A stretch of DNA of 64,000 nt from Azolla caroliniana (Eukaryota; Plantae; Polypodiophyta), in the NCBI GenBank assembly GCA_043228905.1, contig JBHGNT010000011.1, positions 8,494,001-8,558,000 on the forward strand. The letters run 5' to 3'. Below, piece by piece: positions 10,709-42,859 of the stretch. The notes under the pieces were generated by a model, which saw nothing but the letters and a program-made list of their open reading frames with translations, had not been told where the DNA came from and made no database searches. The number at the start of each line of letters is the position of its first letter. Position 1 is the stretch's first letter. The translations under genes and the position numbers were made by a program.

Positions 10709-10748
10709 CTCCCCCTCAAGCTCAACTTATTCTTGCTTGAGGTTCTCT

Positions 10749-11372: not shown

Positions 11373-11986
11373 TGTTGGGATTACGATCCCTTCGGATGGG
11401 ATGGTCGGATGTCGGAGATGAATGCCGACGAGCCCGGTTTCGGTTTCGGATCCGGATGTTGAAGACCCCGGCTTCGGTGCCGGATGACGAATGTACCCGG
11501 AGAGCGATCTGGATGCAGGGACATATCCGTGAATATGTCCGCTAAGGGCCCCTGAGGCTATAGTTGTAAATATCCCCAAAGTCATATATGTATAAATATG
11601 ACTTAGGGCAAATAGTTTTGTTGTTGCTAATCATTTTTCTGTTTTTCCACTCAAGAGGAGTGAAGAGGGAGCAGCCGTGAGAGAGAGAGAGAGAGAGATA
11701 GAGCGTGAGAGAGGAAGAGGACTACGCCTCTGTGTATTTCCGCCGCCTGTGGCGAGGACAGCGAGCTCAAGGTCGTCGCCTTGCAGCTCGCCATTGTGTA
11801 CTTCTCTTTGTATAGCGTTGGTTTGGAGTCTCGTACTCCCGTGGTTTTTCCCATCTAGGGCTTTCCACGTTAATCCCTGTGTATACGTTTGTTTCTCTCT
11901 TTGGTTCCTATTTTCTGCTGCATTGATCCGCGATTACTCGGTTGTGGCCGAGTGGTGAAGGTCAATCGAAGCGTCGATTCACAACA
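11373..11986 (+). repeat. 5' LTR of element D
   Basis: TGTTGGG...CACAACA; one difference seen from the other copies (T11573 vs G). Confidence 0.95.
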
Positions 11987-11989
11987 AAC

Positions 11990-12001
11990 TGGTATCAGAG
12001 C
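11990..12001 (+). promoter_or_regulatory. Primer-binding site, initiator tRNA-Met (element D)
   Basis: TGGTATCAGAGC 3 nt after the LTR. Confidence 0.95.
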
Positions 12002-12016
12002 GAACTGCTGCTGAAA

Positions 12017-16093: not shown

Positions 16094-16103
16094 AGGGGGA
16101 GTT

Positions 16104-16717
16104 TGTTGGGATTACGATCCCTTCGGATGGGATGGTCGGATGTCGGAGATGAATGCCGACGAGCCCGGTTTCGGTTTCGGATCCGGATGTTGAAGACCCC
16201 GGCTTCGGTGCCGGATGACGAATGTACCCGGAGAGCGATCTGGATGCAGGGACATATCCGTGAATATGTCCGCTAAGGGCCCCTGAGGCTATAGTTGTAA
16301 ATAGCCCCAAAGTCATATATGTATAAATATGACTTAGGGCAAATAGTTTTGTTGTTGCTAATCATTTTTCTGTTTTTCCACTCAAGAGGAGTGAAGAGGG
16401 AGCAGCCGTGAGAGAGAGAGAGAGAGAGATAGAGCGTGAGAGAGGAAGAGGACTACGCCTCTGTGTATTTCCGCCGCCTGTGGCGAGGACAGCGAGCTCA
16501 AGGTCGTCGCCTTGCAGCTCGCCATTGTGTACTTCTCTTTGTATAGCGTTGGTTTGGAGTCTCGTACTCCCGTGGTTTTTCCCATCTAGGGCTTTCCACG
16601 TTAATCCCTGTGTATACGTTTGTTTCTCTCTTTGGTTCCTATTTTCTGCTGCATTGATCCGCGATTACTCGGTTGTGGCCGAGTGGTGAAGGTCAATCGA
16701 AGCGTCGATTCACAACA
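16104..16717 (+). repeat. LTR copy 2 of element D (follows PPT)
   Basis: Direct repeat of 11373-11986. Confidence 0.95.
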
Positions 16718-19700: not shown

Positions 19701-21547
19701 TGGCGAGGACAGCGAGCTCAAGGTCGTCGCCTTGCAGCTCGCCATTGTGTACTTCTCTTTGTATAGCGTTGGTTTGGAGTCTCGTACTCCCGTGGTTTTT
19801 CCCATCTAGGGCTTTCCACGTTAATCCCTGTGTATACGTTTGTTTCTCTCTTTGGTTCCTATTTTCTGCTGCATTGATCCGCGATTACTCGGTTGTGGCC
19901 GAGTGGTGAAGGTCAATCGAAGCGTCGATTCACAACAAACTGGTATTACATGTAGAGCTCAACTTGCTCTTGTCAGTCTTCTGGTCTCTCACTCTCTCTC
20001 AGAGTTCTCTACTCACTATACTCTGTTTTTTCTTACTGCTTACTTCCTATTTACTCTCACTTACTTTTACCTAAGTCATAAGTTATTACACATGCAGCTA
20101 ATTAGCTGCCAATAGCTAATTAGCTGTCAGTCGCTAAATAGCTGTCAGTAGCTAATTAGCTGTCAGTAGCTAATTAGCTGTTTCTCCTTTATGTTCACTA
20201 GTAGCTAAATAGCTACTATAGCTTATTTCTCATAAGCATCACATACCATGTTGAGCTTGCTTCTCAACACTCCCCCTCAAGCTCAACTTATTCTTGCTTG
20301 AGGTTCTCTTCAATCTTCTTTTCCATTTTGCTTTTTAGCCATCTCATCAATGTTTACAACTCCCATCATGTTCCGAAACTGTGTATGTTTTTCCACACTC
20401 AATCCCTTCGTAAGGATATCAGCAACCTGCTGATTTGTATTCACATACACCAGATCAACTTCACCTTCCATCACTTTTTCTCTAACAAAGTGATAATGCA
20501 CCTCAATGTGCTTTGTTCTTGCATGGAACACTGGGTTCTTTGCAAGCTGAATGCTGCTCATATTGTCACACCAGATTGTGACAGCACCATCTATATATAC
20601 TCCCAGATCAGCAAGCAGTCTTCTGATCCATACTTCTTCACATGTGGCTATTGCAGCCCCTCTATACTCAGCTTCTGTACTGGACAATGCAACAGTAGCC
20701 TGTTTCTTGCTACTCCATGAAATTCCTGCACTTCCCAAGGTAAACATGTATCCACTTGTGGATCTCCTGTCTGTTTGGCTTCCAGCCCAATCAGCATCTG
20801 TATATCCTTCCAGATTTATGTCTAGATCAGCCCTGTAAAATAGTCCAAAGTTCTGAGTTGCTTTTACATACCTCAGAATCCTTCTGATGCAGTCCAAATG
20901 TGGCTTTGTTGGCTGTTGCATAAACTGGCTGACTGTTGGGATTACGATCCCTTCGGATGGGATGGTCGGATGTCGGAGATGAATGCCGACGAGCCCGGTT
21001 TCGGTTTCGGATCCGGATGTTGAAGACCCCGGCTTCGGTGCCGGATGACGAATGTACCCGGAGAGCGATCTGGATGCAGGGACATATCCGTGAATATGTC
21101 CGCTAAGGGCCCCTGAGGCTATAGTTGTAAATAGCCCCAAAGTCATATATGTATAAATATGACTTAGGGCAAATAGTTTTGTTGTTGCTAATCATTTTTC
21201 TGTTTTTCCACTCAAGAGGAGTGAAGAGGGAGCAGCCGTGAGAGAGAGAGAGAGAGAGATAGAGCGTGAGAGAGGAAGAGGACTACGCCTCTGTGTATTT
21301 CCGCCGCCTGTGGCGAGGACAGCGAGCTCAAGGTCGTCGCCTTGCAGCTCGCCATTGTGTACTTCTCTTTGTATAGCGTTGGTTTGGAGTCTCGTACTCC
21401 CGTGGTTTTTCCCATCTAGGGCTTTCCACGTTAATCCCTGTGTATACGTTTGTTTCTCTCTTTGGTTCCTATTTTCTGCTGCATTGATCCGCGATTACTC
21501 GGTTGTGGCCGAGTGGTGAAGGTCAATCGAAGCGTCGATTCACAACA
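16718..21547 (+). repeat. Three tandem 1610-bp units (AACTGG stub + copy of 10383-11372 + D LTR)
   Basis: Exact 1610-bp period in the sequence and the ORF track; units 16718-18327, 18328-19937, 19938-21547. Confidence 0.96.
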
Positions 21548-24500
21548 CTGACTAATCCAACAGCATAGCTCAAATCAGGTCTTGTTATAGTCAAATAAAT
21601 AAGGCTGCCCACCATAGACCTGTATATGTTTACATCTTCTATCTTGGCTCCCAAATCAGCCCTCAACTTGCAGTTTTTATCAAGTGGTACAGCAATAGGT
21701 TTGCATCCAAGCATACCATACTTTTTCAACATAGTTGTTGCATACTGTTTTTGCAACATACATATACCACTTTCAGATCTGATGATTTCAATACCAAGAA
21801 AATATCTCAGATCTCCCAAATCTTTCATATGAAACTGCATTTCCAGATTTTTTTTCAACTTTCTTATTTCATCCACGGAATCTCCTCCAATAATCAAATC
21901 ATCTACATAAATCAGAATAATAACAATGCAATCATTTTCACTTTTTACATACAAAGAAGGATCAGCTTTTGACATTTTGAAACCAAGATTTTTCAGAGAA
22001 TCTGAAAGTTCTCTGTGCCATGCTCTTGGTGCCTGTTTCAGTCCATAGAGAGCTTTTTTCAGCTTACATACATAATCAGGATGTTTCTTATCTTCAAAAC
22101 CTGGTGGTTGACTCATATACACTTCTTCTTCCAAGTTACCATGTAAAAAAGCATTTTTTACATCCATGTGATGCAAAATCCATTTTCTGGCTGCTCCTAC
22201 AGCAAGTAGTGTTCTCAAGGTTGCCATCTTTGCAACCGGTGCAAAAGTCTCATCATAATCAATCCCTTGCATCTGAGCATATCCTTTTGCAACCAATCTT
22301 GCTTTATGTCTACTTACATTCCCATTGGAGTCATGCTTTGTCTTGTAGACCCATTTGCAGCCTACCACATTTTTCTCTTTTGGTAACTTCACTAAATCCC
22401 ACGTTTTGTTCTCAGCCAATGCATCAATCTCTTCTTGCATTGCATCCATCCATTTCTTCTCAGATTTTGCTTCTTCAAAGCTGTTTGGGTCAGGGATCTG
22501 TACCACCTTAGACATATATGCATAGTGCATAGCCATATATGTATCATACCCAAATCTTTCCACAGTCTTTTTCTCTCTATCTGATCTTCTCAGTTTCTGA
22601 TTTGCATTCTTTATTGCCTTTTCCATACCAGGGATTTTCATTTCCTGTATTCCAAGGAAATCATCCAAAGACATATCTGAATCTTCATCTTCCATGTTTT
22701 TTGATAGGTCATCCGGGATTTCATACTCTGGCATTTTCTGTTTTCCTTTTTTGTCATCAGATTTTTTCTGTCCAGTTTTTCCACTCCATGAATTTGAATC
22801 AAATTTACCATCTGAGCTTTTTGATGGTCCAGAACATTCTGTTGATGTTGGACTTTGCTGTCCAACCTTGTCTCCATCTCTGTGACAGTCTTCTACATTT
22901 TCTGATCTGTCTTTGTCTTCATTTTGACAGTCTTCATCAGTCTCTAGATTCTGTTTTGGGCTGTACCAACTAGCCAACTCATCAAATATCACATCTCGAC
23001 TTGTCACAATCTTTTTAGTCACAGGGTTATAACATCTGTACCCTTTTTGTTCTTCTGAATATCCAACAAAGATACATTTTTCTGCTTTTGGATCCAACTT
23101 ACTTCTTACTTCTGCAGGCACATGTACATATGCAAGGCATCCAAACACTTTCAAGTGTTGTAAGCTAGGCTTCCTGCCATAAAAACACTCTTCAGGAGTT
23201 GCCTCATGTACTCCTGATGTAATACATCTATTTAAAATGTAATTTGCTGTATTTACAGCTTCTGCCCAATACTATAATGGCATGTTCTTCTCAGTCATCA
23301 TTGCCCTTGCTATGTTCACCAAAGTTCTGTTTTTCCTCTCAGCAACTCCATTTTGCTGTGGAGTATATCGGCATGTGAACTGTCTTCTTATTCCCTGATT
23401 ACACAAAAAATCAGAAAATTCATTGGAGAAATACTCTCCTCCTCCATCAGATCTCAAACATTTTATCCTTGTACCAGCCTGCTTTTCTACCATGCATTTA
23501 AACTTACGAAAGCAGTCAAATACTTCACTTTTCTCCTTCATGAAGTACACCCATGTCTTCCGTGAACAATCATCAATAAATGTAACATAAAATCTGCATC
23601 CACCAATAGATGCATTCTTTGTTGGTCCCCATACATCTGTATGTACCAAATCCAACAGATTTTTGCTTACATGTCTCTCATGAGGGAATGGCAACCTGTT
23701 TTGCTTACCATATTGACATGCTTCACATACTTTTCCCATTTCACACTTTTTCAAGTTTGGCAGTCCAGCCACTGCATCTTTTCTCAACATATTCTTTAAT
23801 GTTTGCATACTTATATGGCCAATCCTTTTATGCCACATTTCCACATCTGAGATTACACTCGTTCCATTTGCAAACATGGCTGAAATCTGTTTGGGCATTT
23901 CTACATCCAAGATAAACATTCTTCCTTGTCTCTTCCCTTTTGCAATGAGCTTCCCATTCTTTTCTATATAGCATCCACTTTGCTTAAACTTCACTTGCAT
24001 ACCTTGCTCTACAATCTGTCCAACAGAAATCAGATTCTTAGCAAGGTTTGGAACATGCATCACATTTAACATATACTTGGTTTTTCCTCTTTCTTCCCAC
24101 AATGGGATATCTCCAACATGTTTTATTTGGTGAGTTGTGTCATCACCTGTTTGTACATAACCAGGAACCTCTGGTTCTCTTAAACTCTCAAACCAATTTG
24201 CATGTCCAGTCATATGGTTAGATGCCCCCGAGTCTACATACCACGTAAACTCTTCATTACATTTCTGTGAGCTTTCAGCCACTGCTGCTATCTCATGTTG
24301 CACTACAAAAACACCTTCCTTTTCACAATCTTCACTAGTAGAGGCATAGTTACTCTGTTGTCCTTTTCCTCTTTTCTCATCATTTTGTTTCTTGTAACAT
24401 TCAGCTTGTGTATGGCCTGGTTTACCACAATACCAGCAGCCATCATCATTTACATAAGTTTGCTTACCTCTACCTTGGTTGCTCCCCCTGCCTCTGTTGT

Positions 24501-25254
24501 TGTTTCCTCCTCTATGAGCTTGTTGTCCTCTTCCTTGAAAGCCATTATTATTGGTTCTTCCTGAGCCAAATCTTCCATGGCCTCTTCCTCGGCCTCTTCC
24601 GGCATTATTATAGAGGGCTTGCCCCTCGTTCTCTGAGTTTCCTTTATTTGCATCATCCATCTGATTCCTTTCCTCTACCACAAGCATTGAGACCAGATCT
24701 GAAAAACTTGGGATACTATCCCTTGTGAGCATAGAAGTTTTAAAACTCTTGTATTGAGGTCCTAAGCCTCTTAAGCATATTTCCACTTTGTCATCATCTT
24801 CTATCTTCACATTGATAGAAGCAAGTGATTCACATATACTCTTGATTTTTAGGGCATATTCATTTATTGACATCTTACCTTTCTCCAAGGTATTTAGCTC
24901 AGTCTTTAACTGGAGCTTTCTAGCCTTTGTGTTCACAGCAAACAGTTTTACCAAGTTGTCCCAAGCTTCTTTTGGGAGCATAGCATCTTGTATATGCCCA
25001 AGCATTGAATCTGAGATGCTGAGTGATAGCCAATGCATTACTTTCCTTGCCCCTTGATTCCAATCTTTAAATGCCTTAATATGTGCAGCTGTTGCATTCT
25101 CTTCTGGGATCTCTGGAGCCTCTTCTAGGTCTCCTTCAATGTAATCCTAGTATCCTTTCCCCATCAGAAAGTTTGTCATTCTGAATTTCCACGCCGGGAA
25201 ATTGTTTTTATCTAATTTCTCTGTGACCATTTGGCCTACATTCTCTGCAGCCAT
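21548..25254 (-). pseudogene. Element C gag-pol (gag, protease, integrase, RT) with two in-frame TAG stops
   Basis: ATG 25254; stops near 25147 and 23272 in one frame; CWYCGKPGHTQAEC, YVDSGAS, SKLDPK, YVDD. Confidence 0.93.
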
Positions 25255-25386
25255 TTTTTTCCTTCCAAAAAACCAGGGTTTTGCTTTAGTTACTTCAACA
25301 AGTAACTTTCTGATTTCTGATCAGCAACCAGAGAAATAACTTTCTCAGATTAAGGCACTGCTATACTCTTCCTTACGAGCTACTAT

Positions 25387-25398
25387 GCTCTGATACCA
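25387..25398 (-). promoter_or_regulatory. Primer-binding site, initiator tRNA-Met (element C)
   Basis: Reverse complement TGGTATCAGAGC abutting the LTR. Confidence 0.95.
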
Positions 25399-25863
25399 TG
25401 TTAAGAAAACGTGAAGAAGGCACTCGAGCTCTTCTTATGTGCGCGGCGGATCGTAGTGTGTTGGATCGTTAGCGTGCTCTAAACAGACAGAGAAAGGAAA
25501 GGGGACTTACCTCTGTAGTAGCAAAATGGTTTTCTTCTATTACATGTAGAGCTCAACTTGCTCTTGTCAGTCTTCTGGTCTCTCACTCTCTCTCAGAGTT
25601 CTCTACTCACTATACTCTGTTTTTTCTTACTGCTTACTTCCTATTTACTCTCACTTACTTTTACCTAAGTCATAAGTTATTACACATGCAGCTAATTAGC
25701 TGCCAATAGCTAATTAGCTGTCAGTCGCTAAATAGCTGTCAGTAGCTAATTAGCTGTCAGTAGCTAATTAGTTGTTTCTCCTTTATGTTCACTAGTAGCT
25801 AAATAGCTACTATAGCTTATTTCTCATAAGCATCACATACCATGTTGAGCTTGCTTCTCAACA
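25399..25863 (-). repeat. 5' LTR of element C
   Basis: Direct repeat of 10244-10708. Confidence 0.95.
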
Positions 25864-28855: not shown

Positions 28856-31199
28856 GTTAAACGATTGAGTTCAGCCAAAATAGGAGCCGTTTGGTTGGAC
28901 AACAGCCCTAGATTTGTACAGCCCATTAGTGGTTCCATTCCTTCCAAGCAAGTTAGCAATGTGTTCCTAGCCCAAGTCATTGTTAGTACTAAAAGCACTC
29001 CCCCAGTACCCGTCCTAGCACTTCTAGATTCCGGAGCTAATTCCTGTTTCATGGATCGAAATTTTGCCCAAGCTTCTCAGATATCCTTAAGAAAACTTCC
29101 TTGTCCCGCATCTGTAGTAGTCATTGATGGTCGTCCCATTGCTTCCGGGAATATTGTAGAAGAATCAGAACCCATTCAAGTTGTCCTAGGTAGTTTTGTG
29201 TGTTTAATATCATTTAATATAATTAGTAGTCCAGAGCATCCCATTGTCCTAGGATTACCTTGGTTTGAATTACATAATCCAGCCATAGATTGGAGAACAA
29301 GAGAAGTCCGATATCGACCACCCCAAGAATCAACTCACCAAGTTTCGACCATTTCACCCCATCAACTATGCGAAGAAGGACCCAAGGAGGCAATGTTCCT
29401 ATTTGCAATATCAGTACATCCTTCTAGCACTATTAAGAAGGACTCCTCAGTACAACTTCCAGCAAAATATCATCCTTATGCCGATGTATTTGACAAGGTA
29501 AAAGCCGGTACCCTTCCTCATCACCGTCCCTATGACTGTCCCATCGATTTACAACCAGGAACCGAGCCACCATGGGGACCAATTTACAACTTGTCACCCA
29601 CCGAGTTAGAAGTCCTTCGAGCCTACATAGAGGAGAACTTGGCAAGCGGGTTCATCCGCCATTCGAAATCTCCGGCCGGTGCACCCATCTTCTTTGTCAC
29701 TTCGTCTTGTCGTTGATTACCACGGATTGAATAAAGTCACCATCCAGAATAGGTATGCACTTCCTCTTATATCAAGTCTTTTAGAGCAAGTTAATGGTGC
29801 CAAGTTTTTTACTAAAATCGACCTACGAGGAGCGTATAACCTCGTGCGGATCCGATCGGGAGATGAGTGGAAGACCGCCTTTCGCACGCGGTATGGGCAT
29901 TTCGAGTATACTGTTATGCCGTTTGGCCTAACCAATGCACCCACAGTCTTCCAACACATGGCAAATGATATATTCAGAGACCTCTTGGATATCTGTTTGA
30001 TCATTTATCTGGATGATCTATTGATTTATTCGAAGACCCAGGAAGACCACGATTCTCATGTACTATTAGTACTAAAGCGACTCCGCGAGAATGGTCTTTA
30101 TGCCAAGCTAGAAAAATGTAGCTTTGACTGCAAGCAAGTGGAATTTCTAGGCTACGTCATCTCCTCAAAGGGCATCGCCATGGATCCAGCTAAAATCCAA
30201 ACTGTACTAGAGTGGCAAATTCCACGGTCGGTACGAGATGTACAATGTTTTCTAGGTTTTGCTAACTTCTATCGTAAGTTTATACAGGATTACTCGAAGA
30301 TTATTTTACCTCTCACACAACTTACGAAGAAGGGTCAAGCATTTCTTTGGTCCATAGAAGCAGATATGGCTTTTCGGCATCTTAAGAAAGCCTTTACATC
30401 AGCACCGATTCTAGCTCATGTGGATACAAGCAAACCATTCATCATGGAGGCCGACGCATCAGATTTCGCCCTCGGTAGCATCCTTTCTCAACAAGGCGAT
30501 AAAGAAGAGTTGCATCCGGTGGCTTTCCATTCGCGCAAATTCGATGTCGCAAAAATCAACGACGAAATACATGACAAGGAGTTATTAGCTATCGTGGATT
30601 CATTTGTACAATGGCGGCATTTCTTAGAGGGCTCTCCACATCAGGTCATTGTCTTTAGCGATCATAAAAATCTTGCTTATTTTCAGAATGCTCGCGTACT
30701 AAATCAACGGCAAGCTCGGTGGGCGCAATTCCTCACGCGTTTCGACTTCAAAATCACATATCGACCGGGGAAGCAGCAAGGAAAAGCAGATGCACTATCA
30801 CGGCATTCATATCTTGCACCTCGTCCTAGTGACGCAACATTTGATAATCAAAAGCAAGTAATCTTGGGACCAACACGATTGCACACGACGCGAATTTTTC
30901 ACACCCCGATGGATTCACGGATTACCGATGACATACGTGCAACCTTGAAGATGGATAGTTTTGCTCAAGACATCCTGGCGCACATTGATACTTCTCGGGC
31001 ATCCTATTCTCAGTCTCAACAACCAGGTATTGACTACCGACAATTCGAATATCATGATGGTTTGTAGACGACTACGTTCGGACCTGTGATGCTTGTTGCC
31101 GAGCAAAGATGCCACGACACCATCCATATGGCTTGTTGGAACCTTTACCAATTCCAAGTAAACCATGGCAGTCTATTTGTCTTGATTTTATCACAGATC
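28856..31199 (+). pseudogene. pol: Element F pol (protease, RT, RNase H, partial integrase) with small deletions
   Basis: ORFs 28865-29716 and 29679-31067; KKKDGS motif deleted near 29698; integrase Zn-finger deletion near 31062. Confidence 0.88.
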
Positions 31200-31570
31200 T
31201 GTTGTATGTATGGCTGGACTAGCCGCAACACAGGTGTCTATCCGAAACTTCTCCAAAGGGGTGGTAGGGATAGGATGTTAATACACGCGTATGATAATTA
31301 CACTTAAGCACAGACGAAGACAAGATTAATAAGCATAAGCAAAACTATATTAATTCTTCGCCACTTCATTACAAAACATCGGATCCTTTTATAGGCATCC
31401 GGCCAGATTACAATCGGTGCTCGGTAGGCAACCGTTAACCGAAACCGAATCGGTTCGGATCCGGATCGGTTACAACTACCGGATCCGTCCCTCCTAATAA
31501 TTCTATTCCTATTTCTATATTTATCCGATCCGACCTTGCTTTCCCATTTGCCTTCTCTGACCGGCCAACA
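31200..31570 (-). repeat. 3' LTR of element E
   Basis: Direct repeat of 40987-41357; minus-strand TATAAAA near 31390. Confidence 0.95.
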
Positions 31571-31572
31571 CA

Positions 31573-31613
31573 TGGCACGCCCGTGGGAAAGTGCATTGCA
31601 CTTCGAACCCACA
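31573..31613 (+). promoter_or_regulatory. Second, antisense tRNA-Arg(UCU)-type primer-binding site at the PPT position of element E
   Basis: TGGCACGCCCGTGGGA-[AAGTGCATTGCACT]-TCGAACCCACA starting 2 nt from the LTR edge; no purine tract on the sense strand. Confidence 0.75.
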
Positions 31614-31824
31614 GCCGGCTTCAGTCTTCCTCCAAATTATCCAGCAAACTCCGCTCAGAGGTTTCAAGTGTTGTCTTGCCTGTGCCGTCTCCGACTTCCG
31701 ATTGGATTGGCTGCCTTTTCGCATCTTGCTGCTCCGACTCTGCTTGTACCGGTGGTACCGGTGTTTCTTCTGTATCCTGTCCGGGTCTGTCCTGCTCTAC
31801 CTCCATTCCGTTCCCGGTATCGCT

Positions 31825-34821
31825 CTATCCGGTTTCCACTGGTTGTGTCCTTTCCTCCCCGGATTCGGTACTTCTCTGTCTCCACTCTGCATCATCCCCG
31901 GCATCAACCTGTTCTTGCTCCGGAAGTTCTTCCTCGGGTAATTCTTGTCGGGGTGCATTGTTGGTTGGGTCCTCTTCAGCCGGTCGCTCGCCCTCACTGA
32001 CGGAGATCGGCGTTGTGTGTCCCTCGGCTTCCTGTCGCAGTCGGTCCTTCTCGTACCCTTCCAATTCTAGTTGGGTTTCGAGCTGCCCGTCATCCAACCT
32101 CTCTACTAACCCTCGGATTTCCTTGAGATGCTCTTCTGCTAGAGCATAGAAATCCTCCGACAATTCTTCCCGGATGTTGACGATACTTTCTTCGTCCATT
32201 TTATAGAACCCATCTCCGGTTTTCTTCCGATTTTCTGCATCAGCTCGGAGTGTCTGCAGTTCAGCTGCCTGTTGTGCCCATTCCCTCCAGAGTTTCTCCG
32301 TGCTTTCATTTATGCTGGCCTGAGCTCGGGTACTCCAACTTGACATGATGAACTTAATTCGGTCAACCCCTGCTTTAGCCTGTTCCGAAGCTGCTTGTTT
32401 TTCCTTCCTTATCCGTTTGATGATGTCGGCCATTAACTGAGCTTGAGCTTCAGAGTCGGCTTTTTGCTTGTCACAGGTACTCCGCCATTTGTTGATTTCG
32501 AAAGTCGACTTCACTTTTTCCTCGTTCCTGCTCTTTGTCAGCTCCCCTACTTTCTGCCGAAGTACTTCCATCTCCTTTCTTTGTTCCGACGTCAAGGTCT
32601 TCTCCGTCGATACTTCCTCCCTCGCTTTGGACAATTCCAAGCGGTTTTCCTTGAGCTGCTCTTTCAGCTTCTCTATCTGTCGGTCGTACGTTGTTGCCTG
32701 ATTCTTGATGTCCGACGTGGCCTGTTTATAATCCTTACATAGTCGGTCGAATTCCTCCGTCTTCTGTTTTAGGCGTCGGTTCGCCTGAGCTCGCAACTGA
32801 TCATCCCGGTCCTTTTGTTGTCGGAGTTCCTCTCGCAACCGCTCAATTTCCTGCTCCATTCGTCGACGCAGCCTATCTTTTTCCTTTTGCAGTGTCCCGT
32901 TTTCTTCTTGTAGTCGGTCATTGGTGGCTTTGCTTCGGCGAAGGCCTTCCTCCATTCGCCGTCTGTCGTCTTCTACCAACTTCCGCTGCTCTCTTTCGTT
33001 ATCTCTCAATGCCTCCTGAGCCTGTAATTCTTCTTTCAAAGTTGCTATTAACTTCTCGGTCTCAGGGCCGGTTTGCAAGGCCTTCTCCATTTCTGGTTCG
33101 GCTTGCTTTTCTGATGTCCCGACCGGCTCGGTGCCATCTTGTGCTTGTCGGCTGCCTTCTTTTGCCTGTGCTAGCTCTTCTTGCAGCTCATGTAATTGTG
33201 CCCGGAGCATGACCATATCCTTAGTCGTCGTCCTAGTCACTTCTTCCCTTTGCTCCTCCTCTTTCTCCATCTGGTCTGCTACTCCCGACAACTGCCCTGA
33301 CAACCACCTTAGCCATTGTGCCTTTGTTCTGCCTTCGTTGGTGTCAGCAGGCGTGCCTAGCTCCGGCTGTTTTTCCGGCTGTTTCTCCGGCCTCTTCTCT
33401 TGTTCCGGCGCTTGTTCCTTTCTTTGTTCTTCGAACTCCGCCGCCGTCGGTTCCGGTACTGCCGTCTTTGGTGCAGACGGACCTTCATCCTGTGTCGCTT
33501 CTGTTCCGGTTACTGGAGGCGGTTCTTTTGCCCGTTGCTGACTTCCGTCCGCTGTTGGGGTCGGTCTTGTCGCTCGTTTCTCCTTTCCTTGCCTGGGTGG
33601 TAGTATTAACATCGGTTCGGATGAGTCTTCCTCTGTTTCAGCGTCCTCCGTCGGTGCGACTATTGGTTCCTTTACTGGTACCGGTTCCGATTCGAGCGTT
33701 ACTGGTTCGGTGTCGGTTTGCCTCTTGCTGGTCTTCTTCGCCAGCTTCTCCTTGCCTTTTTCCGCCTTTTTCTTCTTCGTTGTCGGTTGCTGTTGCTGTT
33801 TCTGTGGCTGCCGTGATGAGCCTTCCTCCCGTTGCTGTCGGGAGGAGTCTTCTTCCCGCGGTTGTCGAGATGAACCTTCTTTCCGCAACTGTCGGGATGA
33901 TCCCTCTTCCGGCGGCCGTCGGGATGATCCTTCTTCCCGCGGCGCTTCTTCTTCCTGTGTCCATCCTGGAGTGTGTTTCTCTAGGATTCGTCGGCGCTTC
34001 ATGGTTTGCTTCGGCGTAGTCTCCTGCCGACTTCTTTGCTTGTGCTTGAGGGGGGACACCGGTGGGACCAACACTGTTAACCATTGGGATATTCCGGCCC
34101 ATGGCTTCTTCCCTTCCACCAAGTGCTTGATCGCCTCTTTCAGTCCTTCGGTGATGAAGTGGAGCCAGTCCACCTGCAGGCCTTCGAATGTCGCGATGAC
34201 TATCGCTGCTCGGTATTTGGCTATGGCTGGCGGCCGAGGGTTCACGAACCCATACTCCATCAGGGCGCGGGCCACCTCTCCGAACAGCAGGTTCTCTCCG
34301 CCCTGTGTGCGATACGCCTTGCTGCTAAGGGAGTATTCGCCGAAATACTCGAAGAATATTTGGCTCGAGGGTAGCTCTATCGTCTGAAGTCCTCCCTCCG
34401 AAATCCCTGTGAGCGCTTGTACCGCTCCTTCGGTGACTTCTGCTAAGTCCACCGCTGTTGCCGCCTGCTCTGGTTCCTTGTGTGGTGGAGCGTCAGCGGC
34501 CCGCAGCAGCCCTCCTAATCCGTTCTCCGTCAGCCATTGTCGCGCTCCGTCCGACAGTGCCATCGCTTCTTCTTCGTCTGCTGCTGCCTGTGGTCTGAGG
34601 TCGGGGTGTAGGTGTTCTGCGCGTCGGATCTTGCTGTCTTGAGCCTGCGTTTGCTTGTGGGAAAATTCGTAAAAAGTGAACCCTTCTCCGGTTCTTCCTT
34701 TATATAGTGCCGTTTCCCTCGAGCCGCCTTTTCCTGTTTTTCGCGCGTGCGTATCTTCTGCCATAATTAGCATGTCACTTTTTAATTTTGGCGTCTGCAC
34801 GTCCTCTGCCTCGAATAGCAT
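31825..34821 (-). CDS. Extra ORF of element E (998 aa): small globular N-terminal domain, repeats and long coiled coil; function unknown
   Basis: Open 3-kb frame between pol and the 3' LTR in sense orientation; E/K/R/Q-rich heptads; frame continues past the TAG to 31621; true start may be ATG 34563. Confidence 0.85.
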   Translation of the reverse strand: MLFEAEDVQTPKLKSDMLIMAEDTHARKTGKGGSRETALYKGRTGEGFTFYEFSHKQTQAQDSKIRRAEHLHPDLRPQAAADEEEAMALSDGARQWLTENGLGGLLRAADAPPHKEPEQAATAVDLAEVTEGAVQALTGISEGGLQTIELPSSQIFFEYFGEYSLSSKAYRTQGGENLLFGEVARALMEYGFVNPRPPAIAKYRAAIVIATFEGLQVDWLHFITEGLKEAIKHLVEGKKPWAGISQWLTVLVPPVSPLKHKQRSRQETTPKQTMKRRRILEKHTPGWTQEEEAPREEGSSRRPPEEGSSRQLRKEGSSRQPREEDSSRQQREEGSSRQPQKQQQQPTTKKKKAEKGKEKLAKKTSKRQTDTEPVTLESEPVPVKEPIVAPTEDAETEEDSSEPMLILPPRQGKEKRATRPTPTADGSQQRAKEPPPVTGTEATQDEGPSAPKTAVPEPTAAEFEEQRKEQAPEQEKRPEKQPEKQPELGTPADTNEGRTKAQWLRWLSGQLSGVADQMEKEEEQREEVTRTTTKDMVMLRAQLHELQEELAQAKEGSRQAQDGTEPVGTSEKQAEPEMEKALQTGPETEKLIATLKEELQAQEALRDNEREQRKLVEDDRRRMEEGLRRSKATNDRLQEENGTLQKEKDRLRRRMEQEIERLREELRQQKDRDDQLRAQANRRLKQKTEEFDRLCKDYKQATSDIKNQATTYDRQIEKLKEQLKENRLELSKAREEVSTEKTLTSEQRKEMEVLRQKVGELTKSRNEEKVKSTFEINKWRSTCDKQKADSEAQAQLMADIIKRIRKEKQAASEQAKAGVDRIKFIMSSWSTRAQASINESTEKLWREWAQQAAELQTLRADAENRKKTGDGFYKMDEESIVNIREELSEDFYALAEEHLKEIRGLVERLDDGQLETQLELEGYEKDRLRQEAEGHTTPISVSEGERPAEEDPTNNAPRQELPEEELPEQEQVDAGDDAEWRQRSTESGEERTQPVETG
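33795..33945 (-). repeat. 27-bp coding tandem repeat (EEGSSRQxR x5)
   Basis: EEGSSRRPP EEGSSRQLR KEGSSRQPR EEDSSRQQR EEGSSRQPQ. Confidence 0.85.
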
Positions 34822-35107
34822 GTCCTATTTTTGGCGCCTGCGCATGCTCTGTCATGAATAGCATGTCTGTCCTTTGCTGCCGCGTGTCAGGCTTGCGCTT
34901 CTTTGCCGCGTGTGTCGAATCTCCTACGTGTCTGTCATTATGACTCCTTGATTGCCGCACGTTTTAATTCCTGTACATCGGCCCCCCACGTTCTGTGCTT
35001 TAAATAGCTCGTGCACCCGTGTGACGGTTGTAACTACTTCCTTCATCATTACCATGATTTTCTTGATCTTCTTGTCTTGAATTTTCTACCCGTAGCACCA
35101 CGTCATT

Positions 35108-35109
<2 letters not shown>

Positions 35110-35143
<34 letters not shown>
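35110..35143 (-). repeat. A34 homopolymer just after the pol stop of element E
   Basis: 34 T on the plus strand. Confidence 0.95.
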
Positions 35144-35147
<4 letters not shown>

Positions 35148-35159
35148 ACATGTGCCGCA

Positions 35160-38100
35160 TCATTGTTCGGTTCCCCCCGATGTGTTCGGGTCGGTGCGCA
35201 CTGTTGTCGGTTCCTCGTCGTTGTTACGCGTCGGTGTCGGCTCCTCGGTCCTCCGGATCTGTGTCGGTTCCTCGCCATTCGGGATTTCCGGGTCTTGCTT
35301 GAAGGGGTTAGCTGGCATGTGCCCCTTATACGGTTTTAGGCGAAACCCATTTGCCCATTTGCCCACAACTTCTCCTGACAATGTCCCGAGCTGGTAAGAC
35401 CCATTGTACTCCTTTGTGATCCAGAATGGTCCAGTCCACCGAAATCGCAATTTCCCTGGCATGCTCCCCATCCTTGTCTGGAACAGTAATACAGGTTTCC
35501 CGACCTCGAATTCCTTTTCGTTACCGCGCCGGTGTCGGTCTACAAAGGCTTTCCTCCTCCTTTGCTCTAGTTCTAGCTGTAGCAGGCTGGCTATTCGATT
35601 TTCTTCTAGTTCCAACAGCATCTCCAGCCGGATTCGTTCGGATTCCTTCTCGCTTAACCGCTCCTTAACCTGTATTCTTAAGCTAGGAATTTGGAATTCT
35701 ACTGGCATGACTGCTTCCAAGCCGAATGCCAGTCGGAACGGGGTTGTCCGGATGCTAGTCTTGTACGTCGTTCGGTACGCCCACAGCACGCTCTGCAACT
35801 TCGTGTCCTAGTCGGTCCGGTTCTCATTGACGATTTTTCTAAGGATGTTCTGTAGCGTTTTGTTCGTTGATTCCGCTAATCCGTTGGCTTGAGGGTAGTA
35901 GGGAGTGCTTCGTTTGTGTACTACCGCATAGAATGATGTCAAACTTTCCACCACCTGCCCGAGGAAATGTCCTCCCTGGTCACTGATCAGCTCAATCGGG
36001 CATCCGTACCGACACCATATGCATTCATATAAAAATTTGGCCGTGGACGCCGCCGTGTTGTCCCGTAATGCCTTTGCTTCTACCCATTTCGTGCAGTAGT
36101 CGGTAGCTACTATTATATACCGATTTCCGGTCCGCATTGCCGGTGGCTTGAATGGACCGACAAAGTCCAAGCCCCACTTTTGGAATGGTTCTAATGGCAA
36201 GACCGGGTGATGTGGCATCCGGGCCTGCTCCGTGGGTTGGCCCAGTCGTTGACACAGGTCGCATTCCCTGCTATACTTAACGGCATCTCTCATGGTAGTC
36301 GGCCACCATAGTCCGCTCTGCCATATCTTCCGGGCTGTTGTTTCGCCGGCATAATGCCCGCCTGCAATTCCACAGTGGGCTTCCCTCAGGATCAGATCCT
36401 TTTCATCGCTCCGCACTGCTCGCCTCCATACGCCATCTGCCCCCTTGTGATAGAGGGTGTCTCCTACCAAGCAGAAATGTCTGCTCCGTACTGCCATCCT
36501 TTTCCGTTCGTCTCGGTCCAGGTTTTCCGGGGGAACTCCGGTGCTCAGGAACTGATGCATTTCGGTTAACCATTTGTCTTCGTCCGCTACTGTGGCCTCC
36601 GTTGCCGGTGCTGTCGTGACCCTAAACAGCTCGGCGTCGGGAAATTCGTCCTGTACGCCGTCCCCTGATTCTCCGGATTCTAGTCTGCTCAGGTAGTCTG
36701 CTACCGCATGCTGCACCCCGGGTCGGTGGAAAATGTCGAATTCGAATTCCTGTAATAGCAGCGTCCACCGTGCGAGTTTTCCTGTCAGGGCTGCCTTTGA
36801 GACCAGGTAGAGTAGTGCCGAGTGGTCAACGTGGAAGGAGAACTTTCGTCCGAGCAGATAGTGCCTGTACTTTGTGACACTCTACACCATTCCTAATGCC
36901 TCTCGTTCCGTTGTAGAGTAGTTCCGTTCGGCTTTCGAGAGTTTCCTGCTTGCGTAGTACACCGGCCGATACCATTTCGGTTCCGTGAGTTGCATCAAAA
37001 CGCTGCCGATTGCTACGTCCGACGCGTCGACGAAGACGTGAAAGCTTTTACTCCAGTCCGGCGGCTGCACCACCGGAGCTTGTGACAGCATTACCTTCAA
37101 CGCTTGGTAGGCTTTCTCCTCCGTTTCTGTCCATTGGAAAGGTACTCTATGTACAGCAGCGTGCAATGGTGTAGCAAAGTCGGCAAGGTGCCGTATCATC
37201 CGACTATGCCACCTTATTTGACCAAGGAATCGGCTTAAAGCCTTTGCGCTATTCGGTGCCGGTGCGTCGAGAATTGCTTTTACCTTATCCGGATCTACCG
37301 CGATTCCTTCCCGACTCACCACGTGGCCTAACAAGTTGCCGCTTGCGACTCCAAAGACGCACTTAGCCGGGTTCAGACTTAATCGGTACTCGCGGCACTT
37401 TTCTAAGCATAGTCGTAGGTGATCGAGATGCTCTCCGTGTCGGCTGTAGACGGCGAAATCGTCTAGGAAGACCTGCATAAAACCGGGAATAAAATCACCG
37501 AAGATTTCCATAATTATCCTTTGAAATGTTGCAGGGGCTGTCTTTAATCCGAACATCATCACGACCGCGACGAACACTCCCCATTCCGTCACGAACGCTG
37601 TTTTCTCTTGGTCGGCCGGGTTCATTCGGATTTGGTTGTAGCCGCTGAATCCATCCAGGAAGCTGTAAACTTCGTGGCCGGCCACCGCATCTAGCACTCC
37701 GTCCGTGAATGGTAGTGGAAAAGCGTCGGTCACTGTCGCGGCATTTAGTTTCCTGTAGTCCACACATACCCGGATTTTGCCGTTCTTTTTCGGGACCACC
37801 ACTATCGGGCTTAGCCAGGTTGCCTGCTTGACTGGTCGGATAAATCCGACCCGGAGAAGCTTGTCAATTTCCTCCTTCACCTTTGCCGCATAGTTTGGAT
37901 TCATCCGGTACCGACGTTGAGCGATGGGTTTCGCGTCAGTACTTAGATGAATTTGGTGCTGGTAGAGCTGGGGGTCCAACCCTCGCATGTCTTCGTATGA
38001 CCATGCGAACACGTCCTTGAAATCTGTTAACAGTGCTACCATTGCCTGTTTTTCCTCCTTCGGCAATTCCTTCGCGACTTTTACCGGTCGGGGTTGTTCT

Positions 38101-40934
38101 GTTGTGCCGAGGTCCACCTCTTCCAGCTGGGATGCTTTCACCCTTTGGGATATCGTCATTTCTCTTTCTAGGGCTTCCTGTGCTTGGCGTAGTTCCCGGA
38201 TCGCCACTTTGTCCGGCTCGTCTGGCATTGTGATGTACGGCTCTACTGCTGCCGTGATATCCACCTCAAAAAGTGGGACGATCTGTGGGTGTTCCTCGAG
38301 GTACCGATCAACTTCCTCATCCGGTAAGCCCTCCAACATGTTGATGCTTTCGGCGTATAAAGGGGTTGCCTCCTTGCTAGTGAGCACCCGTGGTTGCGTG
38401 GCTACCCGTACCTTTGTTTTCCCTCGTCGGAACGTGATCATATTCTTTTGCCAGTTTTGCTTGATATGCGCCGTTCGCAGCCATGGTCGTCCTAACAGTA
38501 GGGGATATGCGCCTTGTACATTCAGCTCTAGTACCACGGCCGATATCCGGAATACGTGGCCTCCTATTGTTACTTCCAAGTCCCGGATAAGACCGGTTGG
38601 TCGGACTGAGCTTGTATCCGCCATGCGTAACCAGAAGGGGCATGGTTCCCACTCCTGGATGCCTAGGTCGTCGCATGTCTGTCGACTAATGACGTTCACC
38701 CTGGAGCCTCCGTCAATAATTGTTCCTGGAATCTCCTTTCCTTTGACGATTGTCGTGATTGCTGGGCTACTGGTATCGACCACCGCTGGGCCTTCCTCCG
38801 GGTTGGAGAAAAATGCCGGTGCTGGTGTCGGCGTCGGTTTGCTCACGGCGGCTTGTAAGTCTGCTGTAAACCGCGGCACCAACTGCAGTAACCGTGCCAA
38901 CGGCAGCACGATCTGACAATCTTGTAGTGCTTGCCATGTCGGGTTTTCTCCTGGCTGTGCGATTTCCTCATTCTTTGGCATATTTTGGTCTCTTACTTCC
39001 GCCGCACCTTGTTCGTTGGCTTCTTTGATCCATTGTGCCGCTTGTTTTCTGATTGCTTCCTGGGCTTCCCATTCGGCGGCCTTCCCCTTCGACCGCGTGG
39101 TAACCTGCTGTACTTCGGCTGTCACCATGTTGACTGTTGGCTGCTTGTCGGCTGTTTTGCTTGGGCATTGATTACTGTAATGCCCTTCTTTTCGGCAGTA
39201 ATAACAGTACACCCTGTGCGTGTTGCTGGATTCTCCTTTTTCCCATGTTTGGGGAAGGGGCATTCCCCGGCGGTTGTCCTCGGTTTTTCGGTTCTCCGGT
39301 GCCGCTACTGGTTTGTCATTCCTTGTTGCCTCCCGACGCTCCTCTCTACGGAAAAATCCCCGCCTTTGGTTCCGTCGGAAATTCCGGTTCCCTGGCCGCC
39401 TGTCTTCTCTGCGTCGCTCGTATTCCGGGGATTCGTCTCGGTCGTACCGGTCCCGGGGGTAGCTATCCCTGCGGTTCTCCTCTCGGTCATAGCTGTCGCG
39501 TCTTCTATCAGGGTATCTGTCGCCGCGTTCTCGTCGGTAGCGGTCGTCCCTCCGGAATCGATCCTCTTCCGGGTCCCGATTGCGCGGTTCTATGTGTCGG
39601 ACCGGTGCCGCTTGTCGAGTTAATAGGTTATACTCGCATCGGTTTGTTGTGTGGGCGCGAGAATTGCATATCATGCACTGTGCACGCAGGGTGCAGTCGA
39701 CGGCTGAGTGCCCCGAATTTAGGCATGTTGTGCATTGTAGGGCTTGTCGGAACCGGAGGTCCTCCTCCTTCGGAAGCGCCTGGTGTAACGCCCCCATCGG
39801 CAAGAAGGGGCTCGTGTTGTCCATTTCCAGGACCCGATCAATGACTTGGTCCATTGTGCTGGTGCTGAAATCGAGGATTCCACACATCGCTCGAAGTGGG
39901 TCTTTTAACGCAGCCAAAAAGACTGCCTTGGCCTCCTCTTCGGGTGGTGCTCTTGCTAATTGACTGTGCAAGGTCTGGAAACGAATGATAAATTGTGGGA
40001 CCGTCTCGTTTTCTCCCTGCTGAGTGGTGTAGAATTGTCCGACCAATTCCCTTTGTTCCACTCGTCTATGAAACAGGCGTAAAAACTGGGTTTTCAATGC
40101 CTCGAACGTGGCGAAGCTGCCTGGTAAGTGCTTTGCGTGCCACCGGGCCGCCGGTCCTTCTAATGTCATGCCGAATTCGGCGACTTTGGATCGGTCGGCC
40201 TCGGGCTCCGTCAGTCTCTGGGACACGTGGTTGGCTTCCCATGTTCGCAGGAATGCATACACATGTGCCTCTCCGTCGGGCTCATCCCGATACTTTGGGT
40301 ACGGATACGGCATCGTGTCGTCCCACTGATTCTCCTGCGCTGGTTCCTCCGAAGTCGGTCTCCGCTCCTGCGGTTCCTCCGCAGGTGGTGTTGGTATCCG
40401 CTCCTGCGGTTCCTCCGCGGGTGGTGTTGATAACCGCTCCTGCGGTTCCTCCGCGGGTGGTGTTGATAACCGCTCCTGCGGTTCCTCCGCGGGTGGTGTT
40501 GGTATCCGCTCCTCCCTCCTCGGCGATTGCCGGTCACCGAACTCCAGAGTTATTTCCTCCTCTGGCTCCGATGTTGCTGAGTGATCCGACTCAAAGGGGT
40601 TGTTCTCGTGGCTGCTTTTATAGCGGGATCCCACGCTTTCCCCGCTATCCGAATCCGCCTCTAATGTTGCAAATGCCGCTGCGTCCCCGTCGCCGCCGGC
40701 GAGAGTCTGTAGTAGTGTCTCCGCTTCTTGGAGGCTGGTTATGCTACTGCCTTCGTCGGAAGCTTGTAGAACCTGGAACTGCAGTGCTTCTTCTGCGATT
40801 TGCCGAAGCGTTTTTGAGAATGACCGATCGCGCCGGATCTCGTCGACGGCTTGCTGCAGGGCTTCCCGTCGTCGCTGCCGTTCGGCGTGGCGTCTCCCTC
40901 TTTCGGTGATGTGGTCGTTATTTTGTCTAGACAT
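35160..40934 (-). pseudogene. Element E single-frame gag-pol with two in-frame TAG stops (36882, 35808)
   Basis: ORFs 36882-41018, 35808-36716 and 35160-35798 share one frame; three CCHC knuckles, IIDGGS protease, FLDD RT, FVDAS RNase H, integrase with GPF motif. Confidence 0.93.
40345..40512 (-). repeat. 33-bp coding tandem repeat (TPPAEEPQERx, 4-5 copies) in the N-terminal extension of gag
   Basis: GCTCCTGCGGTTCCTCCGCGGGTGGTGTTG.TA repeated. Confidence 0.9.
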
Positions 40935-40968
40935 CCATCCCCCGGTTGTCCTCTGCACTCTACAGGAA

Positions 40969-40980
40969 TCGTGGTCGCCA
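40969..40980 (-). promoter_or_regulatory. Primer-binding site of element E, probably tRNA-Arg(UCG)
   Basis: TGGCGACCACGA 6 nt after the 5' LTR. Confidence 0.75.
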
Positions 40981-40986
40981 AAATAG

Positions 40987-41357
40987 TGTTGTATGTATGG
41001 CTGGACTAGCCGCAACACAGGTGTCTATCCGACACTTCTCCAAAGGGGTGGTAGGGATAGGATGTTAATACACGCGTATGATAATTACACTTAAGCACAG
41101 ACGAAGACAAGATTAATAAGCATAAGCAAAACTATATTAATTCTTCGCCACTTCATTACAAAACATCGGATCCTTTTATAGGCATCCGGCCAGATTACAA
41201 TCGGTGCTCGGTAGGCAACCGTTAACCGAAACCGAATCGGTTCGGATCCGGATCGGTTACAACTACCGGATCCGTCCCTCCTAATAATTCTATTCCTATT
41301 TCTATATTTATCCGATCCGACCTTGCTTTCCCATTTGCCTTCTCTGACCGGCCAACA
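40987..41357 (-). repeat. 5' LTR of element E
   Basis: Direct repeat of 31200-31570. Confidence 0.95.
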
Positions 41358-41362
41358 AGATC

Positions 41363-42424
41363 TGCCGGTCTCGAAGGGGTTCGATGCTATCCTAACCGTC
41401 GTCGATCGATATACGAAGATGGCACATTTTGTCCCATGTACTAAAGCCATCACTAGCGAGGAAACCGCCGCTCTTGTTATGCGTGAGGTATTTCGGCATC
41501 ATGGCCTCCCAGACAGTATTATCAGTGACCGAGGCCCGCAATTTGTCTCCAAATTTTGGCAGCATCTCTTCAGGATGCTCAAGGTCTCCTGCAACCTCTC
41601 CTCCGACTACCATCCTCAGACCGACGGGCAGACGGAACGAACAAACCAAACGCTTGAGCAATATCTCCGGTGTTTCCTGAGTTATCAACAGGACGATTGG
41701 GCCGAGATTCTCCACTTTGCGGAGTTTGCGTATAATAATGCTATTCACTCCTCGACTCGGGTCTCCCCATTTTTCGCTTATACTGGTTTCCATCCTCGTT
41801 GGTCGGTGATCGATACTCCGGAGCTACCTACCAACCCTCGTGCCGAGGATCATTTGGAGAGGTTACGCAAGATCCAGATGGATCTCTCTACTCACCTTCT
41901 TCATGCTCAACACACAGAAGACTTATGCGAATCGTCATCGGATTCCCTCCTCTTTTGGCATCGGAGATCGAGTATGGCTCTTACGTCGTCACATCAAGAC
42001 TACTCGACCGTGCGACAAGTTGGATTATCGACGACTCGGTCCCTTCCGTATTACGGGTAAGATTAATGATGTCACCTTCCGCCTTGATCTCCCTCCGCAG
42101 CTTCAGATACATCCGGTTTTCCATTGTTCTCTTCTTGAACCTTATAAAGCCAACACCATTCCCGATCGTGTGACACCACCGCCGCCCCCGCTGGAGTTGG
42201 ACGTCGGCCCGGAGTATGAAGTTGCTGCCATCCTCGATTCCAAACTTGTTCGCAACAAACTTTATTACTTGGTCGATTGGCTCGGTTATAGTCCGAGCGA
42301 ACGTACTTGGGAACCCGTCGAGCATGTTGCCAATGCACAGGATCTTCTTGCTGATTTCCACCGAAAGTATCCGGACAAACCCGGTCCGCAATTAGTGCCG
42401 ACTCATTCCACTCGTCATCTTTAA
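41363..42424 (+). pseudogene. pol: Element F integrase core, GPF motif and chromodomain (one frameshift near 41910)
   Basis: DFITD|LPVSKGFD continuity across E; ISDRGPQF, HPQTDGQTER, LGPF, chromodomain. Confidence 0.9.
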
Positions 42425-42435
42425 GGGGGAGATAG

Positions 42436-42859
42436 TGTCATGATATGGCAAGACTCGAACCCATGACCTTATGCTACATGGGTCGAGCTCTTACCATTAG
42501 ACTATGAATTGTAATTTGTAGGATATTATTTTCATTTATGCTTTATCATAGAAAATTGATGTATATTCCAGATCTCTCTGGAACATTCTAGAAGCTTCAG
42601 GATTATTCCTAAAAACACTATAAAAGGAGGCACAAGGCATTGTTTTGAACCAAATTGGTTCAACACCAGTCTTAAGCCTCTTAGCCGATTTGTACTTATC
42701 TTTCATATAATATAAGAGTTGTTGTCATCATCCTATCTCTCTCTCTCCTCTTCTCACTTCCTCTCTCTCGGGAATCTTACGCAGTCCCGTCCTCTTAGTA
42801 CTAATAGTACTACTCTTCTTAGTACTAATTCCATCTCTGTTTTAGTACTATTCCTGACA
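42436..42859 (+). repeat. 3' LTR of element F, with antisense tRNA-like A/B boxes
   Basis: TGTCATGA...TCCTGACA after the PPT; TATAAAA at 42619. Confidence 0.85.

Follow-up and report, generated by a model that had tools for sequence, protein, structure and literature searches.

A tRNA 3′ end takes the place of the polypurine tract in a clade of Ty3/Gypsy retrotransposons and is a likely plus-strand initiation site

We found that element E, an LTR retrotransposon of Azolla caroliniana, has no polypurine tract (PPT) next to its 3′ LTR and carries there a 42-nt block that ends, in the sense of the element RNA, with the acceptor strand and CCA of a tRNA. Apart from the missing PPT, and a 5′ PBS whose match to a tRNA is putative, E is a Ty3/Gypsy retrotransposon on every structural criterion. 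The distribution and conservation of the block among related sequences argue that it is a cis-acting replication signal and is not private to E. We consider it likely that the block is the plus-strand initiation site of the whole clade, because it is where the plus-strand primer ends, on its 3′ side, that fixes the U3 boundary in LTR elements (PMC5371799), and nothing else is conserved at that boundary. The clade therefore probably starts its plus strand by an undescribed route. Positions refer to the window, the whole stretch of 64,000 nucleotides that was analysed.

Element E lies at 31200-41357 on the minus strand and is a non-chromovirus, Athila/Tat-like member of Ty3/Gypsy. Its LTRs, a 3′ copy at 31200-31570 (minus strand, sense TGTTGG...ACAACA) and a 5′ copy at 40987-41357 (minus strand), are direct repeats of 371 bp with termini of the TG..CA type (TGTTG...CAACA). 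They differ by a single mismatch, at 31246, and a 5-bp target site duplication (TSD), AGATC on the plus strand, is present at 31195-31199 and 41358-41362. The preliminary description had called E young on the grounds of LTRs differing at about 1 of 371 sites and a perfect TSD, and both observations were borne out. The minus strand encodes gag, a zinc knuckle, protease, RT, RNase H, and integrase in Ty3/Gypsy order (Pfam), and Pfam returned no chromodomain match in E. The domains from gag to RNase H share an open frame at 36882-41018 (minus strand; mechanical ORF limits). The zinc-binding domain and core of integrase follow at 35808-36716 (minus strand), with one in-frame stop in this copy. ORF3 (31621-34821, minus strand) encodes a coiled-coil, low-complexity protein with the conserved C-terminus ..LLD(N/I)LEED*, and in the E family it terminates at TGA 31621-31623. 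A TAG at 31825-31827 is private to E, as every Logan contig has C at 31827 (sense GAG). An intact polyprotein of 1901 aa exists elsewhere in the family at 98% identity (P0001). Carrying two stops despite near-identical LTRs, E was either mutated after insertion or mobilised in trans. In an RT tree, E falls among Gypsy elements of liverworts and ferns. The end of pol and ORF3 are separated on the sense strand by a run of some 34 A residues (35110-35143, minus strand); it is missing from the relatives examined and could be a trace of the acquisition of the ORF3 module or a copy-specific expansion.

How does the internal region of E end? On the sense strand, with a slash marking the LTR edge, it reads ...GGAGGAAGAC TGA AGCCGGC TGTGGGTTCGA AGTGCAATGCACTT TCCCACGGGCGTGCCA TG/TGTTGGCCGG, and the LTR side starts TGTTGG. 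All of the following features are on the minus strand. The last A of the ORF3 stop is the first base of the 7-nt spacer AGCCGGC, whose other six bases, GCCGGC, make up the segment 31615-31623 together with the stop. Next comes the 5′ half of a T arm (31604-31614; sense TGTGGGTTCGA, plus strand TCGAACCCACA), corresponding to tRNA positions 48-58. A 15-nt palindrome, AAGTGCAATGCACTT, is inserted in the T loop at position 59 (31589-31603); the insert that replaces this tRNA position amounts to 13 nt and forms a 6-bp hairpin. The copy of the tRNA 3′ end, sense TCCCACGGGCGTGCCA, occupies 31573-31588 and consists of the 3′ strand of the T stem, the 3′ strand of the acceptor stem, and CCA. The spacer dinucleotide TG (31571-31572) leads from CCA to the LTR edge. 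On plus coordinates 31573-31588 reads TGG..GGGA, and minus-strand DNA there is TGGCACGCCCGTGGGA, an inverted primer-binding site (PBS). The palindrome had been described as a perfect 7-bp repeat with a 1-nt loop; the stem in fact has 6 bp and the loop 3 nt. As RNA, the block folds into a single long hairpin, the core of which reaches -25.9 kcal/mol (z = -3.4; 0 of 200 shuffles were as stable). Fold z-scores were not significant for longer windows or for the relatives L047 and L048 introduced below, and only the E-type core hairpin stands out.

The lack of a PPT in E had been noted in the preliminary description and is upheld by base composition. Purines make up 53%, 40%, and 43% of the 15, 20, and 30 nt that directly precede the LTR, no PPT adjoins the 3′ LTR, and the nearest purine run of at least 7 nt is 63 nt upstream. 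That run, at 9 nt the longest within 200 nt of the 3′ LTR, lies in the region of the ORF3 stop. The sequence GGAGGAAGA, conserved 45-63 nt upstream, encodes the acidic C-terminus of ORF3. We rejected it as the true PPT because its position does not fit the LTR edge: if synthesis began there, some 55 additional bases would lie outside the LTR, and both the 5′ LTR and the TSD rule this out.

The upstream purine run also bears on a different proposal, in which the block is a cis signal conserved for some other job and the plus-strand primer has gone unrecognised. The job could be to package the genome by way of proteins that also pick out tRNA-Arg, to promote dimerisation or strand transfer, or to direct the processing of an ORF3 mRNA at its 3′ end. 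The block starts 7 nt past the ORF3 stop codon, the purine-rich run is itself conserved, and the conservation of the block and its retention by a non-autonomous family show that it has a function, not which one. Nevertheless, we regard this proposal as improbable. The U3 edge must be set by an adjoining primer and nothing else is there; the purine run codes for acidic residues and is excluded by the same 55 bases; and the motif is located exactly where relatives have their PPT.

Which tRNA does the block resemble? The two T-arm halves of E agree with the documented T arm of human tRNA-Arg-TCT-3-1, an Arg(UCU) tRNA, UGUGGGUUCGA-GU-CCCAC, at 11 of 11 and 5 of 5 positions (PMC9126842, PMC13267816). 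Relative to canonical tRNA geometry, the E copy is one base short between the T stem (CCCAC) and the acceptor strand (GGGCGTG), and all 25 non-redundant representatives described below share this 1-nt deletion. The earlier identification of the block as the T-arm and acceptor half of tRNA-Arg(UCU) thus agrees with this human T arm and departs by one base from the canonical geometry. The assignment of the whole block to Arg(UCU) is provisional and draws in part on a plant tRNA whose acceptor strand we take to be GGGCGTG. The CCA end is not encoded in tRNA genes. ARAGORN predicted no tRNA gene in the window or in 53 loci, Rfam gave no match at 31480-31720 with E <= 10, and the acceptor-stem partner CACGCCC does not occur upstream of the block. 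We therefore rejected a full tRNA or tRNA-like structure, as there is neither a cloverleaf nor a paired acceptor stem. The want of an acceptor-stem partner, and so of a full tRNA-like fold, and the empty Rfam search also count against a cis signal with another job. A role as a Pol III B-box or promoter was rejected because the T loop is interrupted. The complement of the tRNA-like block occurs once in the window, with up to 3 mismatches allowed.

E also has a putative 5′ PBS, sense TGGCGACCACGA (40969-40980, minus strand), which is conserved in subfamilies. A normal PBS at the 5′ LTR had been claimed; the sequence is indeed present, but a 6-nt spacer, CTATTT (40981-40986), holds it away from the LTR. 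The spacer is 6 nt in the E family, of the form C/G-A/T-ATTT (40981-40986; L031, L039, L044), against 2-3 nt (CT or TTT) in relatives. Unless primer processing is different in the E family, its linear DNA would consequently have 6 additional bases at the right end. The 12-mer of the E PBS equals the start of the ERV9 PBS, for which an assignment to tRNA-Arg or tRNA-Trp is disputed (PMC4724089). The PBS region of E is homologous to the PBS of L049, a PPT-bearing relative from Riccia sorocarpa, and the LTR TATA box (sense CCTATAAAAGG, 31385-31395, minus strand) points in the direction of gag-pol. Together, the homology to this canonical element and the direction of the TATA box settle the orientation of E.

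Two further explanations hold that the block is a functionless relic, a tRNA fragment acquired by template switching in the course of reverse transcription, or that the LTRs are flipped and the block is an ordinary PBS. On the plus strand, LTR-CA-TGGCACGCCCGTGGGA does have perfect PBS geometry. Moreover, reverse transcription is known to yield tRNA read-through products as a by-product. Flipped LTRs were rejected, in keeping with the preliminary description, because gag-pol and TATA agree in direction and the 5′ PBS is homologous to that of the Riccia element, which has its canonical PPT at the opposite end. A relic would not be expected to be about 96% conserved next to flanks at about 50-60%, to occur in four organisms, or to be kept by a non-autonomous family. 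Both versions are largely refuted, and we give them very little credence.

The conservation of the block was assessed in two ways. First, metagenome contigs were scanned with a pattern from the hairpin region, and all 46 loci recruited have the same junction arrangement. The invariance of the hairpin stem in the 46 loci holds by construction, since this region was part of the search pattern. Conservation was therefore computed for columns outside the pattern, on 25 non-redundant representatives (<95% identity): it was 0.96 for TGTGGG and 0.97 for GGCGTGCCA, compared with 0.49-0.64 for ORF3, the spacer, and U3. The only substitutions within GGCGTG in these representatives are CpG transitions. 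Second, the read depth and variant table of Logan contigs provide support for the hairpin that is independent of the search. When contigs from four organisms were mapped to 31150-32350, depth at 31560-31600 was 5-10 times that of either flank in each of the four, and dozens of contigs diverged just past 31612 and before 31567. Within the block, common variation is confined to the hairpin loop base at 31595, where A>C is the majority in 4 organisms; across the metagenome loci this base is G, A, or T. No RNA runs containing the stretch were found. In L023 and L043, roughly the first 40 nt of the LTR recur in inverted orientation just after the LTR end (GTACCCTTCCCACTTGTCC...CCGGCCAACA), which may be a nested or rearranged insertion.

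The preliminary description had proposed a check of sister copies, and the motif proved not to be unique to E, being present at the 46 loci, in the relatives L047 and L048, and in the non-autonomous L022. Relatives were recruited by RT similarity. L048, with 60% RT identity, reads CCCAGCCGGGTGTGCCA-GG/TGTTGGCCGG, the edge being defined by both LTRs; it is an old copy (LTR identity 85%) that has neither the hairpin nor the 5′ half of the T arm. L047, with 66% RT identity, reads GGGTTACCA-CATTTGTC-TC-GACAAATG-CTCCACCAGGTGTGCCA-AG/TGTTGG, its U3 edge being taken from TGTTGG as the contig begins inside the 5′ LTR. A different hairpin (CATTTGTC-TC-GACAAATG) thus occupies the same place as that of E. 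The 5′ PBS of L047, TGGCGACTCCGCTGGGGA, is 2 nt from the LTR and presumably corresponds to a tRNA-Arg isoacceptor. The earlier claim that in E exactly 2 nt separate CCA from the LTR edge holds, and the same spacing is seen in L048 and, with the inferred edge, in L047. The dinucleotide itself varies across lineages (TG, GG, AG) at a constant position, as expected for bases that integrase trims. Lineages also differ within the tRNA-end copy, reading CC-A-GGCG or CC-G-GGCG.

More distant relatives retain a PPT at the same junction. In Riccia sorocarpa L049 the junction is AAAGGGGGATAAA/TGTTGCAC and the PBS is TTT-TGGCGACCATGCTGG. The PPT junctions of L052 and L054 are AAGTGTGAGGCTA/TGTGG and GAGCTGGGGGGA/TGTTAGG. 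Those of L055 and L056 are AGGAGTGGGGCTA/TGTAG and AAAAAAAGGGAGAAGAA/TGTTGAC, their LTR edges being inferred from PPT-TG only. The survey excludes L050 (Marchantia) and L053, which carry segmental duplications rather than LTR pairs, and the contigs of L051 and L057 stop before the 3′ LTR. In an IQ-TREE phylogeny built on the RT-RNase H region, L047, L048, and L051 group with the E family in a single clade with support 100/99. Its sister is the L056 group, which has a PPT, as do the outgroups L049, L052, L054, and L055. On the simplest reading of this phylogeny, a copy of a tRNA end would have replaced the PPT once, at the base of the E clade.

A family without pol also carries the block. L022 (1-3285; with L003, L018, and L019), a circularly permuted contig some 3.2 kb long, has its own LTR and a non-coding, purine-rich interior. 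Blastn aligns it to E in the 42-nt block alone, where 42 of 42 nt are identical. It shares the PBS type of E (ACAACA-CCTTT-TGGCGACCAC), and its spacer from CCA to the LTR is 3 or 5 nt, according to which LTR start is chosen. L022 looks like a dependant of the E clade. Dependent elements keep their cis requirements, and the retention of the block in L022 thus points to a replication signal.

How might a tRNA end start the plus strand? In our judgement the chance is a little below even that a host tRNA, or a 3′ fragment of it, anneals to minus-strand DNA and serves as the primer. In this scheme, the ordinary 5′ PBS would serve minus-strand DNA synthesis, after which RNase H would clear the template. 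Two bases in from the U3 edge, minus-strand DNA would then expose TGGCACGCCCG(T)GGGA, and the candidate sequence for pairing with 10 or more nt of a tRNA 3′ end is TGGCACGCCC. An Arg(UCU/CCU)-type host tRNA, or an 18-22-nt 3′ fragment of one, would anneal by its CCA end, and its 3′-OH would be extended through U3-R-U5. Beyond TGGCACGCCCG, minus-strand DNA could offer GTGGGA past one bulged base, and an extruded DNA hairpin would further offer the complement of positions 48-58. The hairpin and this T-arm complement might hold the site open or lengthen the contact between tRNA and template. RNase H would finally take off the plus-strand primer, as it does the minus-strand tRNA, leaving 2 extra bases for integrase to trim.

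A tRNA primer has several attractions. It would require no new enzyme, since RT extends tRNA 3′ ends and RNase H removes tRNA primers (PMC5371799), and it would explain both the CCA and the fidelity of the block to tRNA sequence. The 5′ PBS sequences of the clade resemble tRNA-Arg isoacceptors, with the match in E being to the disputed ERV9 PBS. If they are indeed tRNA-Arg isoacceptors, we speculate that one packaging route could supply both primers. The fuller proposal, that both strands of the clade are tRNA-primed, with a tRNA-Arg-type primer on the RNA and a second tRNA or 3′ fragment on minus-strand DNA, and that the PPT and its RNase H specificity are dispensable, is tentative and to our minds somewhat doubtful. 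Some points count against tRNA priming. The 1-nt gap would limit contiguous pairing to about 11 bp, followed by a bulge. The tRNA would face competition from the element's own RNA, identical in sequence and cut into fragments by RNase H. Finally, the 5′ half of the T arm and the hairpin, which are absent in L048, are unneeded for plain annealing of a 3′ end.

Could the primer instead be cut from the RNA of the element itself? Such a cis-derived primer would be a fragment ending at or just after ...GUGCCA(UG). The hairpin would stall RT or bound the RNA/DNA hybrid, and RNase H would cut about 18 nt downstream, at the U3 edge. To RT, a structured RNA with an annealed 18-nt tail may look like a tRNA on a PBS, and the resemblance to tRNA would then reflect origin and mimicry of the initiation complex, with no tRNA used. 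Counted from the 3′ base of the inner hairpin, the LTR edge is 18 nt away in E and 19 nt away in L047, for hairpins of different sequence, and the strength of the E hairpin as RNA (-25.9 kcal/mol, z = -3.4) also favours this idea. Short, impure primers have precedent, as in the Ty1 plus-strand primer GGGUGGUA, and the tail here is G-rich (GGGCGUG). The plus-strand primer of hepadnaviruses is an RNase H leftover of about 18 nt. The 1-nt deletion would matter less to a mimic than to pairing with a real tRNA. However, RNase H would have to cut a non-purine hybrid at a precise point, and no specificity of that kind is known. L048 has no hairpin, although it is an old copy, and the retention of CCA and the exact acceptor strand across 60-100% RT identity is left unexplained. 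We consider a cis-derived primer rather unlikely, even though it appears to accommodate every sequence fact as well as a tRNA does. The preliminary description had suggested that a second tRNA or a tRNA-mimic RNA primes the plus strand: the site is very likely the plus-strand initiation determinant, and tRNA and mimic fit the sequence about equally.

Comparison with known systems helps to place these possibilities. Retroviruses and Ty3/Gypsy elements (Metaviridae) prime the minus strand with a tRNA and the plus strand with a PPT (PMC5371799). E resembles them in its LTRs, 5-bp TSD, gag-PR-RT-RH-INT order, putative tRNA-type PBS, and 2-nt spacer at the U3 edge, and differs in having a same-sense tRNA 3′ end with CCA instead of a purine tract at that edge. 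Extended or split tRNA-template contacts occur in Ty1, Ty3, and avian retroviruses, and like them E has tRNA-related sequence, T arm included, near its 3′ LTR. The bipartite PBS of Ty3 combines the 5′ PBS with a segment in U3 that, on the genomic RNA, is the complement of tRNAiMet and helps to start the minus strand (PMC5371799). The RNA of E, in contrast, carries the tRNA sense, a difference already pointed out in the preliminary description, and does so outside and upstream of U3 and with CCA; only minus-strand DNA could therefore bind the tRNA. Tf1-type self-priming, and any pairing of the motif with the 5′ PBS, were rejected because the block is not complementary to its own 5′ PBS. Tf1 self-priming and the half-tRNA primers of copia and Ty5 are variants of minus-strand priming (PMC5371799, PMC6317226). 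They show that the type of primer can change by lineage within a conserved scheme, as may also have happened in the E clade, although every known variant affects the minus strand.

Other likenesses lie outside the LTR elements. Hepadnaviruses, like E under the cis-derived reading, use an RNA primer that is not a PPT and whose length is set by RT-RNase H spacing, and the 18-19 nt from hairpin to U3 in E is comparable. The hepadnavirus primer is a capped 5′ end that is translocated; the E primer, by contrast, would be internal and used in place. In the Mauriceville retroplasmid and in plant viruses with a tRNA-like structure (TLS), 3′ tRNA-like structures with CCA start cDNA or RNA synthesis, and E shares with them tRNA mimicry, CCA included, that is probably tied to the initiation of replication. 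Those structures are full acceptor/T-arm mimics at the 3′ terminus of the template, whereas the E block is half a tRNA, internal, and followed by U3-R. Our literature search, whose coverage was incomplete, found no report of a tRNA-like sequence replacing a PPT or of any other alternative plus-strand primer.

Why does this matter? Annotation tools look for a PPT, and those that require one would miss or mis-orient the E clade; the 42-nt block is a specific marker for the clade and its non-autonomous dependants. PPT priming of the plus strand is taken to hold for all retroviruses and LTR retrotransposons (PMC5371799). A recently active clade without a PPT is thus a natural test of how the U3 boundary is set when the PPT is missing. 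If the clade is tRNA-primed on the plus strand, the dependence of retroelements on host tRNAs would be wider, as would their dependence on the tRNA fragments that hosts use against PBSs.

The surroundings of E hold further repeats. E is nested in a second, plus-strand Gypsy element, within its integrase core (31100-31199 and 41358-41460), and the integrase reading frame of this host element runs on across the TSD of E. Nearby, the chromovirus F has, on the plus strand at 42445-42507, inside the start of its LTR and after the PPT AAGGGGGAGA, a sequence complementary to a near-full-length tRNA (TGGCAAGACTCGAACCCATGACC...). The F sequence is complementary to tRNA and inside U3, whereas that of E is in the tRNA sense. 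Finally, the region 10383-25837 contains a tandem unit of 1610 bp, with copies at 16104, 17714, 19324, and 20934 and further copies at 11373 and 25538.
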